Sequence record: PP942979.1
Length of the DNA: 64,000 nucleotides
Direction: 5' to 3' (one strand)
Below are positions 8,297 through 54,880 of the stretch, piece after piece. Within the stretch, counting starts at the first letter, position 1, and each line of letters begins with the position of its first letter. The position numbers and the translations under genes are program-made. The notes under the pieces are model-generated. The model made no database searches, was not told the origin of the DNA, and saw only the letters and a program-made list of their open reading frames with translations.

Positions 8297-8323
8297 AGCG
8301 GTGGCCTTGGGCTGCCGCTTTTG
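8297..8323 (+). terminator. Intrinsic terminator
   Basis: AGCGGTGGCC-TTG-GGCTGCCGCT then TTT. Confidence 0.65.
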
Positions 8324-8342: not shown

Positions 8343-8660
8343 ATGGAAATCTATGTAAGCCTTTCCCATGAGATTCGCGTTGGTCGTCAAGACTCTGATC
8401 AAGCTGTTGCGCCTGAAACCACTGACGGCCAGAGACGTGCTGTTGAGCAACAAGAGAAAGAGCGTATTGTTGAAGAATACGGCATCGACACTCCCCAAGA
8501 GGAAATTGACGAAAAAGAGAAGGAACGCATTGAGCGCGAAGAGGAAAAGCGCGACGAAAACAAGACCAAAGCACCGGAAGATTTGGGTCAGCGTAAGCCG
8601 GAATCTGAACTCACTGGTTCTGAGATTCAAGACCAGCATGATAACCTGACAAAGATCTAG
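8343..8660 (+). CDS. MEIYVSLS-family protein 2, E/K-rich, 105 aa
   Basis: GGAG at 8331, ATG 8343. Confidence 0.8.
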   Translation: MEIYVSLSHEIRVGRQDSDQAVAPETTDGQRRAVEQQEKERIVEEYGIDTPQEEIDEKEKERIEREEEKRDENKTKAPEDLGQRKPESELTGSEIQDQHDNLTKI

Positions 8661-8664
8661 GAAT

Positions 8665-8673
8665 CTGTAAATA
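8665..8673 (+). promoter_or_regulatory. CTGTAAATA motif upstream of the sigma-like gene
   Basis: Intergenic, about 33 nt before ATG 8706. Confidence 0.55.
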
Positions 8674-8705
8674 AGAGTCAAAGCAACTAACAGGTGTATT
8701 TGACC

Positions 8706-9743
8706 ATGAACAATAAGTCGAATCTCACAGGCGGTCAGATAGAAAGCGTCATGGACACAATGCTTCATGACTGCCTGCGTGAGATTGTTGAGAACACGGA
8801 CATATTCGATGTTCAACTGACCTATCTGTTGAACATGATTACGTCGAATAAAAAGCGAAAGCCGTACAACGCCGAGACGCGTGACCGTGCTATCAGCCTT
8901 CTGATTAAGGCGCTGTCTGTGCCTCGCGATCAGAAAATGATTTATATCCAGGAGCTTAAAATGGAGCGTAACTTCATTTACGTCTTCCTGGAAAATGTAA
9001 TTAAGCGATACTACACAACGTATGTAGATCTCTATCGGGGTTTCATTTCGACGCAAGATGCTGTTAAGCGCGAAGCGTATTCGAAACGCCTGAATGCCTA
9101 CGTGAAGATGTTTGGGGCAGAGTCTCGCTCCAAACTCTTTATCGCGTTGTGTCGTTTGAACGATCTTCTGCCGCAGTTCATGGAATACTTCCACTCGGTA
9201 GTTGCTGACTTCTATAGACTATGCAGCAAGCAAACAAAATTTTATGTTGATACGAACCGCGGTAAGCTGTATGACAGCAAAGACGTGCGCCAGAACTTCC
9301 TGCGCAACGTTATCGTGGCTATCAACAAGTATGACTCCTCTCGCGGTGCGATTGTGAGTTATACGAAGTGGTGGATCTTGAACGCCCAAACCTGTAGTAG
9401 CAGCGAGCATGAATACGGCATCGCTTATACTATTCCCCAGACTCAACGTAAGAAACTGGCGACAGGTGAAGATACCACTTCTCTGAATTTCTCGGTAAGT
9501 CTCGATACTCCTGCGAACGAATCTGATGAAGGTGCGGACGCGTCCCTACATCAAAAAGTGAGTGACCATCATCACTTAGAAGATCACGTAGATAGTGAAA
9601 GACGTACTGAAAAACTGAGGCTGCTTATTAAGCGCGTAGACCCACTCGGCGTTGCACGATTGACGATGGATGTGGGTGAGGAGTTCGATAAGTTCGAACT
9701 TGATATGATGCGCAAACATATGCAGGCTCAAGGGCTAGCCTAA
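8706..9743 (+). CDS. Phage sigma70-family RNA polymerase sigma factor (regions 2-3; no evident 4.2 HTH)
   Basis: DVRQNFLRNVIVAINKYDSSRGAIVSYTKWWILNA aligns by eye with RpoD [36 protein letters not shown]; later YTIP and VSLDTP. Confidence 0.75.
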   Translation: MNNKSNLTGGQIESVMDTMLHDCLREIVENTDIFDVQLTYLLNMITSNKKRKPYNAETRDRAISLLIKALSVPRDQKMIYIQELKMERNFIYVFLENVIKRYYTTYVDLYRGFISTQDAVKREAYSKRLNAYVKMFGAESRSKLFIALCRLNDLLPQFMEYFHSVVADFYRLCSKQTKFYVDTNRGKLYDSKDVRQNFLRNVIVAINKYDSSRGAIVSYTKWWILNAQTCSSSEHEYGIAYTIPQTQRKKLATGEDTTSLNFSVSLDTPANESDEGADASLHQKVSDHHHLEDHVDSERRTEKLRLLIKRVDPLGVARLTMDVGEEFDKFELDMMRKHMQAQGLA

Positions 9744-9745
9744 AA

Positions 9746-9754
9746 CTGTAAACA
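9746..9754 (+). promoter_or_regulatory. CTGTAAACA motif upstream of SSB
   Basis: Intergenic, about 39 nt before ATG 9793. Confidence 0.5.
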
Positions 9755-9792: not shown

Positions 9793-11055
9793 ATGGCACG
9801 TGGATTTGGTGACATTCAAGATAACAGCAAACGCGATAGTTTGCGTGAATCAGAAATCTTTGAAATCTTCCCGCTGGCGAAGAAAGCAAACGGCAACTGG
9901 GTTTCAATTCGTCTGTTAGATCTCGACCTGCTTCCGATTAAGAAGCACTGGATCAAGATCATGGGCGGGAAAGACAAAGACAAAGAGATCAAAATCCCGC
10001 GCATGTGCGTTAGCTTCGACCCGGACAATCAGAACAAACCTCTGAACGGTATGAAGTGTCCGTACTGCGGCATCGCTCACGGCAACGACGAATCTGGTGC
10101 ACCGGCGCAGTACGACTATAAGTGGTACGCACAGGCAATCATTCGTGACGAGCAGGCTGCTGCGCCGCGTAAAATGCCGAAGATGACCAAGAAAGAAGAG
10201 AAGTCAGGCAAGAAAGAAATGGGCAGCGAGTCCTGGACTCCTGTGCAGTGTATTCCTCTGTCTAACTCTCTGGCTGGTAAAATCCGCGAGCTGGGTGAAC
10301 GTAATATTCACACGGTCAAAGACAAAAAGTCTGGCAAGAAGTCTAAGCAGGCGTTTCAGGTTAACCATCCGAAGTATGGCTGCGATATTGAAATCAAATA
10401 CAACGCCAAAAAATCTCCGGCAGAGCGTTACACCATCGAACGTGGCGATCATACTCCACTGACGAAAGAAGAACAGGCGTACCTGACCTGGGACTTCGAC
10501 AACTGGAACGAAATCTACGACATGCTGGGCCGTCTGAACGAAGAAGCTGCTATGGCTGACTTCAAGAAGATGGACGTTATCGGCGTTAACACCAACGATT
10601 CTGACGATGGTGATGACGATGACGATGACGACGATGCTATGGCGCTGGGCCGCAAAAAGAAAGGCGGCAAAGCGGACAAGAAAAAACGTCGCAGCGATGA
10701 TGACGATGACGACGAAGATGACGACGATGATGAAGATGATCGTCCTTCCAAGAAGTCTAAAAAGGCGACCAAGTCTCGTAAGATGTTAGACGATGACGAG
10801 GACGATGACGACGAAGACGACGAAGATGATCGTCCGTCGAAGAAAAAGAAATCTTCGAAAGACAAAAAGTCCTCGAAGGTTAAGTCTAAGAAGTCTAAGA
10901 AGTCAGATGATGACGACGAAGACGACGAAGACGAAAAGCCTAAGAAGAAGAAAAAGTCTTCTGACAAGGTGAAGTCTTCCGTTAAGAAGAAAAAGAAATC
11001 TTCTGACGACGATGACGACGACGCGCCGAAGAAAAAGAAGAAAAAGAAAAAGTAA
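9793..11055 (+). CDS. gp32-like single-stranded DNA-binding protein with long D/K block tail
   Basis: IRLL...HW...C...CPYC...Y....I and GCDIEI...Y pattern of gp32-like SSBs; adjacent to recA. Confidence 0.6.
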   Translation: MARGFGDIQDNSKRDSLRESEIFEIFPLAKKANGNWVSIRLLDLDLLPIKKHWIKIMGGKDKDKEIKIPRMCVSFDPDNQNKPLNGMKCPYCGIAHGNDESGAPAQYDYKWYAQAIIRDEQAAAPRKMPKMTKKEEKSGKKEMGSESWTPVQCIPLSNSLAGKIRELGERNIHTVKDKKSGKKSKQAFQVNHPKYGCDIEIKYNAKKSPAERYTIERGDHTPLTKEEQAYLTWDFDNWNEIYDMLGRLNEEAAMADFKKMDVIGVNTNDSDDGDDDDDDDDAMALGRKKKGGKADKKKRRSDDDDDDEDDDDDEDDRPSKKSKKATKSRKMLDDDEDDDDEDDEDDRPSKKKKSSKDKKSSKVKSKKSKKSDDDDEDDEDEKPKKKKKSSDKVKSSVKKKKKSSDDDDDDAPKKKKKKKK

Positions 11056-11112: not shown

Positions 11113-13641
11113 ATGGCGAAAACGAACAACAAGGCTGAGAAGAAAGCTGAGAAGAAAGCTAAAGTCAAAGCCGGTAAGACAAAAGGCAAAGCAGTCGCCT
11201 CTGATGATATTGGCGGCGTAGAAGTAGCAGGCTTTGACCTTGGTAGTCTGATGGACGATGTGCTCGACGGCATCGAGAAGAAAACGAAAGTAAGCTCACA
11301 GGACGCAGCGCGACACGCACCTCGTATCTCTACTGGTGTGCTTGCGCTTGATATGTACCTTGACGGCGGCATCGTACCTGGCGGCTGGTATACTTTCAGC
11401 GGCGGTGAGCAGTCCTGTAAGTCAACAATGACCATGAGTATCATGGCGAGCCTGATTCGTCTGAAATACTCTGGCATTAGCGTAGTGTTCGACTACGAAG
11501 GTTCTACTGATGCTGACTACGTTGCTGGCCAGCTCAAAACGTTTGGCGTTACTGTTGACGCGAAGACCATCTTTGGTGTGCGTGACGGTGACGACGGCAA
11601 CTGGATTATCAAACCGCGTATTCGCTACTACGCGCCGGACAACGGTGAACGCTTCTTCGATTATATGTCGATGCTGCGTCGTCGTCTGCCTGATAAGATC
11701 GTCGATAAAGACGGTAGCTCGTACTACATCTTTGAGAACAACAAAGAGAACGCCAAGAAGGTTGCTGGCAAGTACGATAAGAAGTGGTTCAGCCGTAACA
11801 ACCAGTTCAAAGTTCCTGCGTCTGACGGTCACATGCAGGCTATGGTTATCGTTGACTCCTATCCTGCGATGATGCCGGATCAGGTCGATGATGACGATGG
11901 CTCAAAAGCAATGGCACTGCAAGCGCGTATGTTCTCTGACGGCATCAAACGTTTCCGTGGTGGTATGCGTCGTAAGATGATGACCATCGTTGGCGTTAAC
12001 CAGTTGCGTCAGAAACCTGCTGTGATGTTCGGTAGCCCTGAGTATGAGCCTGGAGGTGATGCGTTGAAGTTCTATTGCTTCGACCGTGACACTCTGATTC
12101 GTACCGACCACGGTGTGATGACTGCACCTGAGATCGCGCAACTGCTGAAAGATGGCGTTAAAGTTTGCGTTGAATCGTTCGATGGTTATCAGCAAATCAA
12201 TGGCGCGTGGAAAGTTGAAGACGCTCCGTTCCCAATCGAACTGTCTGCTGGAGGCCATAGCTACATCGGTAGCGCAGAGCACCGTCAGTTTGTTCTGGTA
12301 CCTGGCGTAACTGCTGATGGTACGAATGTGTTCTATCCTGAGTGGCGTACTCTGAACGAGATGGCTACCGGTGGGCACGAAGGTGTATACGCTGGTCTGC
12401 GTGTACCGCCTGTCAAAGAACTGAAACAGAACGTACCTGATGCGTTCGATGAAGCAAGCCAGCTTGTAAGCAGTCTGCTTGCTAACTGTGATCCGGTAAG
12501 CGTTCAACTGCCTCTGGCCACGCATGGTGATACTACCTATGCAGCGAACGTGCTGACCATTGACGTAGTTGGTGAGAGCACTGATTCCTCCGACTTCTCG
12601 TTCTGGGCTAAGAAGCTGCTGGACATTGGCGTATTCGCTTACGCTGATGAACGTGGTATTCACATGCCTGGTCTGAACAAGCATGAGCTGGAAGAAGCTG
12701 TTGCGCAGGATGCTGACAGTGCGTTCCGTGGTCTGTCTTATGCCGCCACCTGTCGTCAACGTCAAACGCAGATGCTGATTGCTATTGCTGATCGCTTCCC
12801 GGAACTGACTCGCTATGTTCTGGACTATCAGTTGCAGGTAGGCGAAGCTAAAATCTATCTGGCTCCAGAGAACGACTTTGCCGAAGCGCTTGACCTGATT
12901 CTGCATCGTGAGATTGACGGGTACGATGACCTGTACGATCTGCTGATGCAGCAACTGGCTTACGTTGAAGACTGGTACAACTTCGATAGCTCTATCTTGC
13001 CTGTGCCGTTCTCGCTGAAAGTGCTGAACAAAGAAGTTGAGTTCTGGGATGTTAACGTTGCCGAGACTTCTGTGGTTATCACCAACGGCTTCGTATCGCA
13101 TAATAGTGATGTGCGCGTTCGTCTGGCTTCTCGTGCAGTACCTGATGCAGGCTGGACAAAACTCAAAGACGCACCTGGTGTTGTCGGTGAGAAGTCTGTC
13201 ACTATTGAGGGCGGTACTGACCGCTATCGTTTCATTGCTGCTAAGACCATCAAGAACAAGATGGGTGGCATCCCGAACCAGCAGACTTGGTTGCGTCTGT
13301 GGGAAGCTGACGGTAATGGTGAAGCGCGCGGCTTCGACCCTGTGTTCGATACGTGGCACTATCTGAAAGTTCTCGGCCTGATCAACGGCACACGTAAGAG
13401 CTTTAAGATCAAAGCGCCTTGCCCTCTGGCTTCCGAAGTCAAGATGGACTGGGATGACTTCCGCACTCTTATCAACGGCACCAAGACACAAGTTGTCGAT
13501 GTGTGTAAGAAGCTGAAAGTCAAACCTGCCGGCCTGCGTCTGTGGTGCTTCAAGTTCGTGCAATCTGCGAAAGGCAAAGAAATGTTGAAAGCGTCTATCA
13601 GTAAGTCTGCGAAGACTTCTGGTGATGAAGACGACGAGTAA
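11113..13641 (+). CDS. recA: RecA/UvsX-like recombinase precursor containing an intein (842 aa; 499 aa after splicing)
   Basis: RISTGVLALD..L.GGI..G, Walker A GGEQSCKST, VIVDSY, QARMFS, VNQLR, VMFGSPE..PGGDALKFY, KNK. Confidence 0.9.
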   Translation: MAKTNNKAEKKAEKKAKVKAGKTKGKAVASDDIGGVEVAGFDLGSLMDDVLDGIEKKTKVSSQDAARHAPRISTGVLALDMYLDGGIVPGGWYTFSGGEQSCKSTMTMSIMASLIRLKYSGISVVFDYEGSTDADYVAGQLKTFGVTVDAKTIFGVRDGDDGNWIIKPRIRYYAPDNGERFFDYMSMLRRRLPDKIVDKDGSSYYIFENNKENAKKVAGKYDKKWFSRNNQFKVPASDGHMQAMVIVDSYPAMMPDQVDDDDGSKAMALQARMFSDGIKRFRGGMRRKMMTIVGVNQLRQKPAVMFGSPEYEPGGDALKFYCFDRDTLIRTDHGVMTAPEIAQLLKDGVKVCVESFDGYQQINGAWKVEDAPFPIELSAGGHSYIGSAEHRQFVLVPGVTADGTNVFYPEWRTLNEMATGGHEGVYAGLRVPPVKELKQNVPDAFDEASQLVSSLLANCDPVSVQLPLATHGDTTYAANVLTIDVVGESTDSSDFSFWAKKLLDIGVFAYADERGIHMPGLNKHELEEAVAQDADSAFRGLSYAATCRQRQTQMLIAIADRFPELTRYVLDYQLQVGEAKIYLAPENDFAEALDLILHREIDGYDDLYDLLMQQLAYVEDWYNFDSSILPVPFSLKVLNKEVEFWDVNVAETSVVITNGFVSHNSDVRVRLASRAVPDAGWTKLKDAPGVVGEKSVTIEGGTDRYRFIAAKTIKNKMGGIPNQQTWLRLWEADGNGEARGFDPVFDTWHYLKVLGLINGTRKSFKIKAPCPLASEVKMDWDDFRTLINGTKTQVVDVCKKLKVKPAGLRLWCFKFVQSAKGKEMLKASISKSAKTSGDEDDE
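12076..13104 (+). mobile_element. Intein, 343 aa, in RecA (ALKFY|CFDRDT...GFVSHN|SDVR)
   Basis: N-terminal Cys, block B SAEH, block F FWDVNV, terminal HN followed by Ser; removal restores the RecA motif. Confidence 0.9.
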
Positions 13642-17522: not shown

Positions 17523-17571
17523 TATTTCTATGCTAATTTCATCTTGCATTCACTCGCACTGGAGAGACACT

Positions 17572-22010: not shown

Positions 22011-22016
22011 TCACAC

Positions 22017-22039
22017 GAGGGGCGCAATGCCCCTCTTTT
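22017..22039 (+). terminator. Intrinsic terminator
   Basis: GAGGGGC-GCAAT-GCCCCTC then TTTT. Confidence 0.85.
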
Positions 22040-22087
22040 CATTCTGTGACTTAACTCAAACGCAATGCTCCAGAGATGCAACTATGC

Positions 22088-22138
22088 AAATAATAGGCTG
22101 AAATAGGTCTATATACGCACATGCGCCTGTGATACACT
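22088..22138 (+). promoter_or_regulatory. Box + extended -10 promoter
   Basis: AAATAATAGGCTGAAATA ... TGA-TACACT, same spacing as the other copies. Confidence 0.65.
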
Positions 22139-22191
22139 ATATGCAGACGCTACACGTCGTAGCGCACACAACTCATGCTAAGGGGCATACA

Positions 22192-26905: not shown

Positions 26906-26950
26906 CTGGTCAAAATAGCCGTTCTTTTCAGTACCAGTTTATGTTATACT
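26900..26950 (+). promoter_or_regulatory. Box + extended -10 promoter
   Basis: AAATAACTGGTCAAAATAGCC ... TGT-TATACT. Confidence 0.8.
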
Positions 26951-26996
26951 GAGAGCGAGCGCTATTGCTCATAAAACTCAAGCTGAGGAGCTTAAC

Positions 26997-39946: not shown

Positions 39947-39979
39947 GGCTTGTTTTCGAAGGTTGCCCTATGATACACT
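39928..39979 (+). promoter_or_regulatory. Box + extended -10 promoter
   Basis: AAATAACTGGACAAAATAAGG ... TGA-TACACT. Confidence 0.8.
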
Positions 39980-40035
39980 GTTTATGAGCGCTATCGCTCG
40001 TTTTTCTCATATAAGAAGACAGAGGAAATAAGACA

Positions 40036-43356: not shown

Positions 43357-43401
43357 CTGGTCAAAATAGCGCTTCTTCGTGAGGCGCTTTTCTGCTATAA
43401 T
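43351..43401 (+). promoter_or_regulatory. Box + extended -10 promoter, with a terminator-like hairpin in the spacer
   Basis: AAATAACTGGTCAAAATAGCG ... TGC-TATAAT; AGCGCTTC/GAGGCGCT-TTT at 43368-43391. Confidence 0.8.
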
Positions 43402-43468
43402 AGCAGCTAGAGCAACATCGCTCTCAACGTCACTTTTAACTATACGTTTATAACGGGAATTGTCATTT

Positions 43469-48379: not shown

Positions 48380-48424
48380 TCGGCTGAAATAACCATGCTG
48401 TCTAAAGTGCGTCTATGCTACAAT
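48374..48424 (+). promoter_or_regulatory. Box + extended -10 promoter
   Basis: AAATAATCGGCTGAAATAACC ... TGC-TACAAT. Confidence 0.7.
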
Positions 48425-48456
48425 ATGCGTAGACGCACTAACAAAGAGAAAACGAT

Positions 48457-52346: not shown

Positions 52347-52348
52347 GC

Positions 52349-52399
52349 AAATAACTGGTCAAAATGACGGTAGTATCTGAAACCGCATTATGATATACT
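52349..52399 (+). promoter_or_regulatory. Box + extended -10 promoter
   Basis: AAATAACTGGTCAAAATGACG ... TGA-TATACT. Confidence 0.8.
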
Positions 52400-52452
52400 A
52401 GAAGCGTAGCGACTGCTGCGCTTTTTTAACTTATGTCTGAGGAGACAACAAA

Positions 52453-54521: not shown

Positions 54522-54523
54522 GC

Positions 54524-54574
54524 AAAAATCTGGACAAAATGACGGTTGTCTCAAAACAGCGTCCGTGTTAGAAT
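54524..54574 (+). promoter_or_regulatory. Box + extended -10 promoter (first of a tandem pair)
   Basis: AAAAATCTGGACAAAATGACG, TTGTCT 17 nt before TAGAAT, TG extension. Confidence 0.8.
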
Positions 54575-54580
54575 ATAGAT

Positions 54581-54740
54581 GTAGGGCGCATATCGTGAGG
54601 AGTGCGCTCTATATGCGAATGACGCGATTCGCAGTACGAGAGAAGTTCTTGACCGTGTGTTTTCGTTTTTCCCGGACACACGGTCCTTTTTCAAGTGCCT
54701 TCGAAGTTTGAGGGTGCTTGCGAAAGGGTAGATACTCTTT
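54581..54740 (+). ncRNA. Candidate small structured RNA (alternatively a 32-aa leader peptide, 54613-54711)
   Basis: Own promoter; five consecutive hairpins, including a perfect 10-bp stem followed by CTTTTT. Confidence 0.45.
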
Positions 54741-54769
54741 GAACACTGCCAGCTATCTGGGAAGTATGC

Positions 54770-54821
54770 AGAAAACTGGACAAAATCGTGGTTGTTATCT
54801 GACGGCCACCTGAGCTATACT
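54770..54821 (+). promoter_or_regulatory. Box + -10 promoter (second of the pair)
   Basis: AGAAAACTGGACAAAATCGTG, TTGTTA, TATACT. Confidence 0.75.
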
Positions 54822-54880
54822 ATATGCAGACGCATTGAGCGTCGCAAACAACATATCACTTATACTGAGGAGTATTAAAC

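Follow-up and report, generated by a model that had tools for sequence, protein, structure and literature searches.

The DNA analysed in this work, hereafter called the window, is a stretch of 64,000 nucleotides (nt) that corresponds to bases 186001–250000 of the genome of Erwinia phage phB78 (PP942979.1), position 1 being genome base 186001. phB78 is a jumbo phage of the genus Alexandravirus, with a genome of 261,824 bp and Erwinia amylovora as host; the segment 8000–10500 of the window matches relatives such as Dickeya phage AD1 at about 86–98%. On the plus strand, at 8706..9743, lies SHZ78_230, assigned from the list of open reading frames (ORFs), the GenBank record and a match with PHROG 17569. 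This gene encodes a protein of 345 amino acids (aa) plus stop, with an ATG at 8706 and a GTG at 8694 as alternative start. It is labelled 'RNA polymerase sigma factor' in GenBank and is the only sigma factor annotated in the phB78 record, in which no RNA polymerase gene is annotated. The identity of SHZ78_230 as a sigma factor is therefore already known. What is new here is a sigma-4 domain that appears to be shortened, a putative family-wide class of promoters without a −35 box, and a probable programme with two sigma factors. A sequence-only reading of the window had drawn attention to this ORF, and the peptides that it quoted (a region 2 block, YTIP and VSLDTP) are all present.

The SHZ78_230 product is almost certainly a factor of the sigma70 family, as that reading had proposed. 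Residues 1–344 match PHROG 17569 (RNA polymerase sigma factor) over positions 1–340 of the 341 of the profile (E = 5.5e-156). A word-indexed search gave 229 relatives at E ≤ 0.001; those listed are mostly about 330–400 aa long, and many come from contigs of 200–310 kb. The Pfam domain PF04542 (Sigma70_r2) is detected in about a dozen of the best 120 of these 229 relatives. Since a single-sequence phmmer search of the PDB returned only chance matches with haemoglobin, a profile was needed, and a 47-sequence family alignment (A1) was used both as profile against all PDB sequences and in hhalign. Among the 18 PDB matches at E ≤ 10, the first 17 are SigA, SigB or HrdB proteins, aligned at profile positions of about 156–235. 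In a wider search, the family profile found 493 clusters (50% identity) at E ≤ 0.001 among 1.84 billion representative proteins. The best 150 of the 493 are all family-sized, and ordinary bacterial sigma factors are not evident among them, which suggests that the PHROG 17569-type family forms its own, mostly viral clade within the sigma70 superfamily. The homologue gp118 of phage PaBG has likewise been reported as a sigma70 factor with an HHpred probability of 99.9% (PMC7412058).

The similarity to bacterial sigma factors is concentrated in region 2. Using hhalign with A1, residues 161–239 align to residues 375–450 of Escherichia coli RpoD, i.e. regions 2.1–2.4 (E = 5.9e-5), so the sigma-2 homology presumed by the sequence-only reading is borne out. 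Together with the PDB profile matches, this alignment delimits regions 2.1–2.4 at residues 161–232 (9186..9401, plus strand), the module for core binding and for −10 recognition and melting. The block DVRQNFLRNVIVAINKYDSSRGAIVSYTKWWILNA (residues 193–227) is aligned, within the same match, to RpoD 403–438, regions 2.2–2.4. Y219, W222, W223 and T229 align to RpoD Y430, W433, W434 and T440, and N226, invariant in the family, stands in place of RpoD Q437. Of these recognition and melting residues, Y219, W223, N226 and T229 are invariant or nearly so, and W222 is the family consensus. The AlphaFold2 model of the protein has a mean predicted local distance difference test (pLDDT) score of 82; its best PDB matches in Foldseek are E. 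coli sigma70 chains, with template modelling (TM) scores of 0.40–0.47. In a viral structure library, the best matches to this model are members of the family, followed by other phage sigma factors.

Upstream of region 2, residues 1–160 (8706..9185, plus strand) form a helical domain, delimited with AlphaFold2 and Foldseek, in which the motifs NLTGGQI and NKKRK are conserved. The model is all-helical here, with pLDDT mostly 84–97 from residue 11 onwards. The N-terminus had been described as unrecognised. This still holds at the level of sequence comparison, the N-terminal 165 residues giving no significant hhalign match to RpoD 1–380 (E = 0.36) and region 1.1 not being detected in SHZ78_230. 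It no longer holds entirely for the predicted structure, because the best matches to the whole-protein model are sigma70 chains that include 1sig (sigma70 regions 1.2, non-conserved region and 2), with about 300 aligned columns. From the Foldseek ranking, the N-terminal domain could possibly resemble sigma region 1.2 plus the non-conserved region.

After region 2, residues 233–256 (9402..9473, plus strand; conservation and AlphaFold2) comprise a family-specific loop, HEYGIAY, and a region 3.0-like helix, IPQTQRKK. The loop is nearly invariant, with E236, Y237, G238 and P244 invariant in the family, and helix 245–253 is modelled at low confidence. Both YTIP (241–244) and VSLDTP (264–269) fall in highly conserved columns. 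The IP of the IPQxQRKK helix would match RpoD I452-P453, the helix standing in place of the RIPVH 3.0 helix. In the family the distance between this IP and SLDTP is only about 20 residues. The equivalent points of RpoD are separated by about 55 residues, and from this difference sigma-3 is, by alignment, reduced to roughly one helix. Residues 257–287 (NFSVSLDTP...LH; 9474..9566, plus strand) would then form an acidic linker resembling region 3.2, as indicated by its charge (mean net charge −5.5 in the family) and by a weak alignment co-linear with RpoD 501–524 (hhalign, E 0.03–0.08); its pLDDT is below 50 in the model.

The last part of the protein, residues 288–345 (9567..9740, plus strand), can be described from AlphaFold2 and hhalign as a shortened sigma-4 without recognition helix. 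Just three helices are predicted after the linker (288–311, 316–321 and 329–341). A sub-alignment of residues 255–345 is co-linear with RpoD 501–586, with one template and E values of 0.03–0.08. In this weak alignment the SLDTP...LH segment pairs with ISMETPIGDDEDSHLGDFIED of RpoD region 3.2 and the LIKRVDPLGVARLTMDV segment with LAGLTAREAKVLRMRFGID of region 4.1. The sigma-4 portion aligns to RpoD 546–586, its last helix pairing with the first helix of the region 4.2 helix-turn-helix (HTH). The alignment stops at about RpoD residue 586, and the RpoD recognition helix spans about 584–600. The SHZ78_230 chain ends 10 residues after the invariant M335, and 37 of the 47 aligned relatives end at most 15 residues after it. 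The domain has a mean net charge of −2.3 in the family versus +2 for RpoD 546–613.

The same architecture is found across the relatives. Neither a Pfam region 3 nor a region 4 domain is present in any of the 120 (best 120 of 229). Nearly all of the best 150 of the 493 clusters are about 305–370 aa long, with the profile match typically reaching to within a few residues of the C-terminus. In the five members with longer C-terminal tails that were inspected, the tails are of low complexity, basic and rich in S, T and P, with no HTH. No separately encoded 4.2 HTH was found in the ORFs directly downstream of the sigma gene in related loci. We conclude that the region 4.2 recognition helix is very probably absent, in agreement with the claim that the protein ends before the −35-binding HTH; a cryptic region 4.2 is found neither in the protein, nor in the family, nor in the ORF directly downstream. 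Lack of 4.2 thus appears, over the alignments, as the norm of the whole family and not as a truncation of one member. In the subgroup of phage Lu11 a small ORF of 56–59 aa is conserved between the sigma and SSB (single-stranded DNA-binding protein) genes. It is represented by gp175 of Lu11 (locus L053, 11008–11184), with homologues in loci L040, L042, L044, L045 and L052. As a candidate for the missing HTH, this 57-aa ORF was rejected because its sequence does not look like an HTH and it occurs in that subgroup only.

Among known proteins, Lu11 gp174, PaBG gp118 and the Yoloswag protein, annotated as 'putative RpoD subfamily sigma-70 subunit', are orthologous to SHZ78_230 (35–100% identical, same length). 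In the Lu11 gp174/PaBG gp118 type the genes are likewise ordered sigma, SSB, UvsX/RecA, and the CTGTAAATA motif is shared by Lu11; there is no essential difference. With RpoD/SigA the overall fold is closest, regions 2.1–2.4 being homologous and traces of 3.0, 3.2 and 4.1 following in the same order. SHZ78_230 differs from these proteins in having no detected region 1.1, 4.2 recognition helix or C-terminal tail, a sigma-3 of about one helix, and no match with the NCBIfam RpoD model. The extracytoplasmic function (ECF, group 4) sigma factors are also minimal sigma70-family proteins without region 1.1 and most of region 3. However, their sigma-4 HTH is complete and they depend on a −35 box, the reduction in SHZ78_230 being the opposite one; an ECF-like fold in phB78 belongs to another protein, SHZ78_321 (see below). 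SHZ78_230 is neither a group 1 sigma factor, nor an ECF, nor a member of the gp55 family.

Phage T4 gp55 (PHROG 234), which acts with gp33 and the gp45 clamp, is nevertheless the closest functional analogue, the −10-only promoter use being predicted in the case of SHZ78_230. Common traits are a sigma-2 domain, no HTH to read a −35 box, a single-block promoter and redirection of the host RNA polymerase (the last two predicted here). The T4 late promoter is TATAAATA, and TGTAAATA of phB78 differs from it at one base. No sequence relationship to gp55 is detected: the gp55 PHROGs (234, 34068 and 12791) are absent among the PHROG matches of SHZ78_230 at E up to 1, and hhalign of A1 with gp55 gives only a spurious match of 38 columns (E = 0.13). 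The view that region 2 is closer to RpoD than to gp55 is supported by this value against the 5.9e-5 obtained with RpoD. Furthermore, gp55 has 185 aa versus 345 aa for SHZ78_230, in which a large N-terminal domain, a 3.2-like linker and 4.1-like helices, all lacking in gp55, are retained. For gp55, base flipping at −12, −9 and −8 and a helix-loop-helix motif have been reported (PMC7892883); in SHZ78_230, by contrast, the RpoD-type Y/W melting residues are kept.

The comparison with T4 raises the question of a partner. By analogy, and as the sequence-only reading had surmised, a separate phage protein could replace region 4, with the sigma alone sustaining only basal activity; such a two-part factor seems unlikely to us. 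The missing recognition helix and the precedent of gp33 plus clamp acting with gp55 (PMC7892883) speak for it, and candidates would be a flap-binding co-activator not recognised so far, the sliding clamp (phB78 has an annotated clamp loader), the second sigma-like protein, or the very acidic ORF directly upstream of the sigma gene. This small ORF (8343..8660, plus strand) encodes 105 aa with a net charge of −14 and lies between a strong terminator and the motif preceding the sigma gene; it matches no PHROG, and a promoter of its own is not evident. T4 gp33 is small and acidic as well. However, the ORF is conserved only in close relatives, distant family members having unrelated upstream genes, and for this reason it was rejected as a family-wide partner. 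No gp33-type gene is annotated in phB78, the gp33 sequence itself not having been searched, and the family's own conserved 4.1-like C-terminal domain could bind the flap.

The sigma gene is preceded by a promoter-like motif, here called M class. The copy AATCTGTAAATA lies at 8662..8673 (plus strand), 32 nt upstream of the ATG, with its CTGTAAATA core at 8665–8673; this is the box that the sequence-only reading had placed directly upstream of the gene, and it turns out to be a real conserved element without −35 partner that fits −10-only initiation. A variant, AAAACTGTAAAC (9742..9753, plus strand), shares bases with the sigma stop codon and precedes the SSB gene by 39 nt, with CTGTAAAC at 9746–9753. 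The window contains 7 exact copies of CTGTAAATA versus 0.28 expected, a number reached in none of 100 shuffles. Over both strands of the whole phB78 genome there are 62 CTGTAAA sites, 61 of them co-oriented with the local genes, and the only one on the minus strand of the window is located before the primase gene, itself on the minus strand. The logo AA(T/A)CTGTAAA(T)A was obtained from the 34 sites that lie at most 130 nt before a gene start. The motif, of the form AA(T/A)CTGTAAATA, lies 25–55 nt before the start codons of replication and recombination genes. The genes it heads function mostly in replication, recombination and nucleotide metabolism, and include those for a DNA adenine methylase, a ParB-like protein, an NAD ligase, DNA polymerase parts, a clamp loader, a recombination endonuclease, the SSB and the sigma factor. 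No −35 signal is present at the 34 sites (less than 0.25 bit at every position from −45 to −4). An A is preferred 15 nt after the C of the motif, with a purine preference at the expected +1; this A would place TAAATA at −12 to −7 in the usual sigma70 geometry.

The motif is also found in the relatives. Before the sigma gene it is kept 39–47 nt upstream in those of 70–78% identity and about 44 nt upstream in some of 44–45% identity, and in about half of the 48 tabulated loci of relatives TGTAAA follows the sigma match by 5–25 nt. In 35 IMG/VR loci with a sigma 30–45% identical (672 kb, G+C content 35–57%), 204 unique sense sites were counted versus 34 antisense sites, the consensus being AAAACTGTAAA(t)A, again without −35 signal. 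The Lu11 record, whose sigma is 36% identical, has aaaaCTGTAAATAcAtaGTA annotated as "putative middle/late promoter", including a site between the sigma and SSB genes. PaBG-type phages carry the variant GTGTAAAC in intergenic regions read by eye; a search for strand-biased k-mers in PaBG-type loci was dominated by codon bias. On these counts the CTGTAAATA box is a genuine, conserved promoter-like element without a −35 partner, and the missing −35 reader of the sigma fits the short single-block promoters found throughout these phages. One may ask if a sigma without region 4.2, for which no curated NCBIfam match exists, could instead be a decoy or anti-host factor that binds core and competes with the host sigma70 without any promoter specificity. 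We consider this highly improbable: Y219, W223, N226 and T229 are invariant or nearly so with W at 222 in the consensus, the 3.2-like linker is kept, and a strand-specific phage motif occurs in the same phages as the family.

The M class is not the only single-block motif in phB78. A second one, a(c)GCTAATTT(a), lies 30–55 nt upstream of 13 genes, mostly virion or lysis genes, and is likewise strand-specific and without −35 signal. These genes are mostly on the strand of the structural genes (a tail gene, a PAAR gene, endolysin), with the portal operon on the plus strand. The tail sheath gene has another such site before it, and one site lies in the window at 17533–17539. The GCTAATTT motif is probably, judged by the genes it heads, a late promoter class, and a related form occurs in Lu11, whose late genes carry TAATTT(A/T). 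A third class looks host-like, with an extended −10 sequence TGnTA(T/C)A(A/C)T often found after CTGGTCAAAAT among small early-looking ORFs, and recurs in PaBG. Canonical TTGACA-N17-TATAAT promoters are almost absent, with 13 genome matches at 10/12 or better and no strand bias.

A second sigma-like protein is encoded outside the window, at 260234–261373 of phB78. This protein, SHZ78_321 (379 aa; PHROG 19229, 'unknown'), is the syntenic counterpart of PaBG gp112, in which the PaBG authors noted a weak likeness to SigmaE (PMC7412058). Its AlphaFold2 model has a pLDDT of 84.5, and its top two PDB matches in Foldseek are chains of Mycobacterium tuberculosis SigH (probability 0.96 and 0.93, with non-significant E values of 0.13–0.29), AlgU, SigL and SigmaE ranking lower. 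At the sequence level, the SHZ78_321 family gives no sigma match in the PDB with HMMER and no significant match to RpoD with hhalign (E = 0.53); the two sigma-like families align to each other co-linearly at a non-significant E of 0.17.

There are thus two single-block motifs without −35 signal and two candidate factors. SHZ78_230 would be an initiation factor of the Lu11 gp174/PaBG gp118 type that is independent of a −35 box and has the M class as its likeliest target, an overall explanation that we regard as reasonably likely. In this proposal the sigma would work with the host core enzyme, a partner assumed because no RNA polymerase gene is annotated in phB78. Its sigma-2 would dock on the beta-prime clamp helices via the 2.2 motif and, together with the conserved 2.4–3.0 loop, read a long single-block extended −10 element, and the sigma-4 remnant might hold the beta flap without touching DNA. 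With such extended −10 reading and a DNA-free sigma-4, initiation would be independent of a −35 box. The likeliest target would be AA(T/A)CTGTAAATA, which heads replication, recombination, nucleotide-metabolism and sigma genes. Binding of the sigma to its own upstream motif would then constitute positive feedback, in line with the self-activation surmised in the sequence-only reading, seeded by read-through of the terminator at 8297–8319. Our confidence differs between the parts: that the sigma drives −35-less promoters is probable, and that it acts on the M class and not on the late one has slightly less than an even chance.

Several observations weigh against this explanation. SHZ78_230 matches none of the curated NCBIfam sigma models at E up to 10, the alignment over 3.2/4.1 is weak (E 0.03–0.08, one template), and the C-terminal part is modelled with only moderate confidence (pLDDT 77–91). 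The pairing of the SHZ78_230 protein with the M motif is a prediction. The late element cGCTAATTTa contains the hexamer TAATTT, which fits TAnnnT, and an RpoD-like sigma-2 could read it equally well. The ECF-like candidate SHZ78_321 is co-conserved with SHZ78_230, 6–9 kb downstream in Lu11- and PaBG-type loci. Finally, both sigma genes are in transcription units headed by CTGTAAA, so that a cascade with a late switch is equally coherent. In such a cascade, SHZ78_230 would be made from M promoters and would send the host core to cGCTAATTTa before virion and lysis genes, the M class being read by SHZ78_321 or by a modified host holoenzyme, following the logic of T4 gp55 or of SPO1 gp28 then gp33/34. 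This is possible but, in our view, rather doubtful. It agrees with the sigma gene lying behind an M motif among replication genes, with the fit of TAATTT to TAnnnT and the purine at the expected +1, with the retention of RpoD-like residues for −12 and −11, and with the TAATTT(A/T) of Lu11 late genes. The SHZ78_321 operon moreover also follows two host-type extended −10 sequences, so its early expression is possible.

Neither the promoters before the sigma genes nor the phyletic distribution of both proteins discriminated between these assignments of motif to factor, and the same is true of the conservation of both motifs in Lu11 and PaBG and of the RpoD pocket residues. We slightly favour the cascade in which SHZ78_230 reads the M motif over the late switch, and this by inference only, for two reasons. 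The upstream extension AAAACTG of the M motif is conserved family-wide, in parallel with the invariant 2.4–3.0 loop of SHZ78_230. In addition, an ECF-type factor with intact sigma-4, as SHZ78_321 would be, is expected to need a −35 box, which the M class does not have. A more far-reaching version of the favoured scheme can be offered tentatively: a widespread clade of jumbo phages without RNA polymerase (at least 493 protein clusters at 50% identity) would run its middle and late programmes with two sigma factors of its own. One would be the SHZ78_230 type, derived from RpoD, with the −35-reading helix lost and a flap-binding stump of sigma-4 retained, which with host core alone would read the 12-bp extended −10 promoter AAAACTGTAAATA via the family-specific, invariant 2.4–3.0 loop and positively autoregulate its own gene. 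We would rate it as somewhat improbable in this full form.

Most jumbo phages have no RNA polymerase of their own, and it is assumed that they redirect that of the host by means of "RpoD-like" sigma factors. To our knowledge, none of the sigma factors of this jumbo-phage type has been studied biochemically. The searchable literature treats the Lu11/PaBG-type proteins as RpoD-like sigmas (PMC7412058 for PaBG gp118), and Iyer et al. (PMC7824862) and a 2026 review (PMC13282480) discuss jumbo-phage sigma factors in general terms only. We came across no account there of the 4.2 helix being absent or of a −35-less promoter logic for these sigmas, and nothing relevant on the M motif or on transcript mapping in these phages. 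If the family does lack the −35 reader and uses a conserved 12-bp single-block promoter, it would represent a second independent solution to −35-independent initiation after T4 gp55, with RpoD-type chemistry and alignable to RpoD. Its mode of sigma-DNA recognition would lie between that of extended −10 promoters in bacteria and that of the T4 gp55/gp33/clamp system. For hundreds of jumbo-phage genomes, both cultured and metagenomic, the family would also provide a simple rule by which to annotate promoters and temporal classes, and synthetic biology would gain a compact orthogonal sigma/promoter pair.

Several features surrounding SHZ78_230 deserve mention. Upstream, a terminator-like hairpin of intrinsic type (8297..8319, plus strand; 10 pairs followed by a T-run) closes the preceding operon. 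Downstream, the SSB gene (9793..11055, plus strand) directly follows the sigma gene in most related loci, down to 22% sigma identity, and the order sigma, SSB, recombinase is kept even where the sigma is only 22% identical. In the phB78 SSB, poly-D/E and poly-K runs alternate along a C-terminal tail of about 150 aa. The UvsX-like recombinase at 11113–13641 has 842 aa versus about 500 aa in Lu11 and PaBG. Its insert of about 340 aa starts with Cys and ends with ...VSHNS, termini that suggest an intein. No tRNA gene and no Rfam match at gathering score is present within the window.

Probable early promoters lie in the window at 26906–26996, 43357–43468, 52347–52452, 54522–54880, 22011–22191, 39947–40035 and 48380–48456. 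In this probable early class, an extended −10-like TGnTATACT, or TATAAT, stands about 30 nt downstream of CTGGTCAAAAT. In PaBG a palindromic CTGGTCAATTTTTGACCAG is found before TACAAT, and the CTGGTCAAAAT/CTGGTCAATTTTTGACCAG element may be a conserved operator. Elsewhere in the phB78 genome, a non-coding stretch of about 350 nt following an M motif (about 257213–257566) contains two host-type −10 sequences, TGATATAAT and TACTATAAT, and an apparently unannotated ORF with an HNH-like motif lies before the topoisomerase gene (about 258843–259300).

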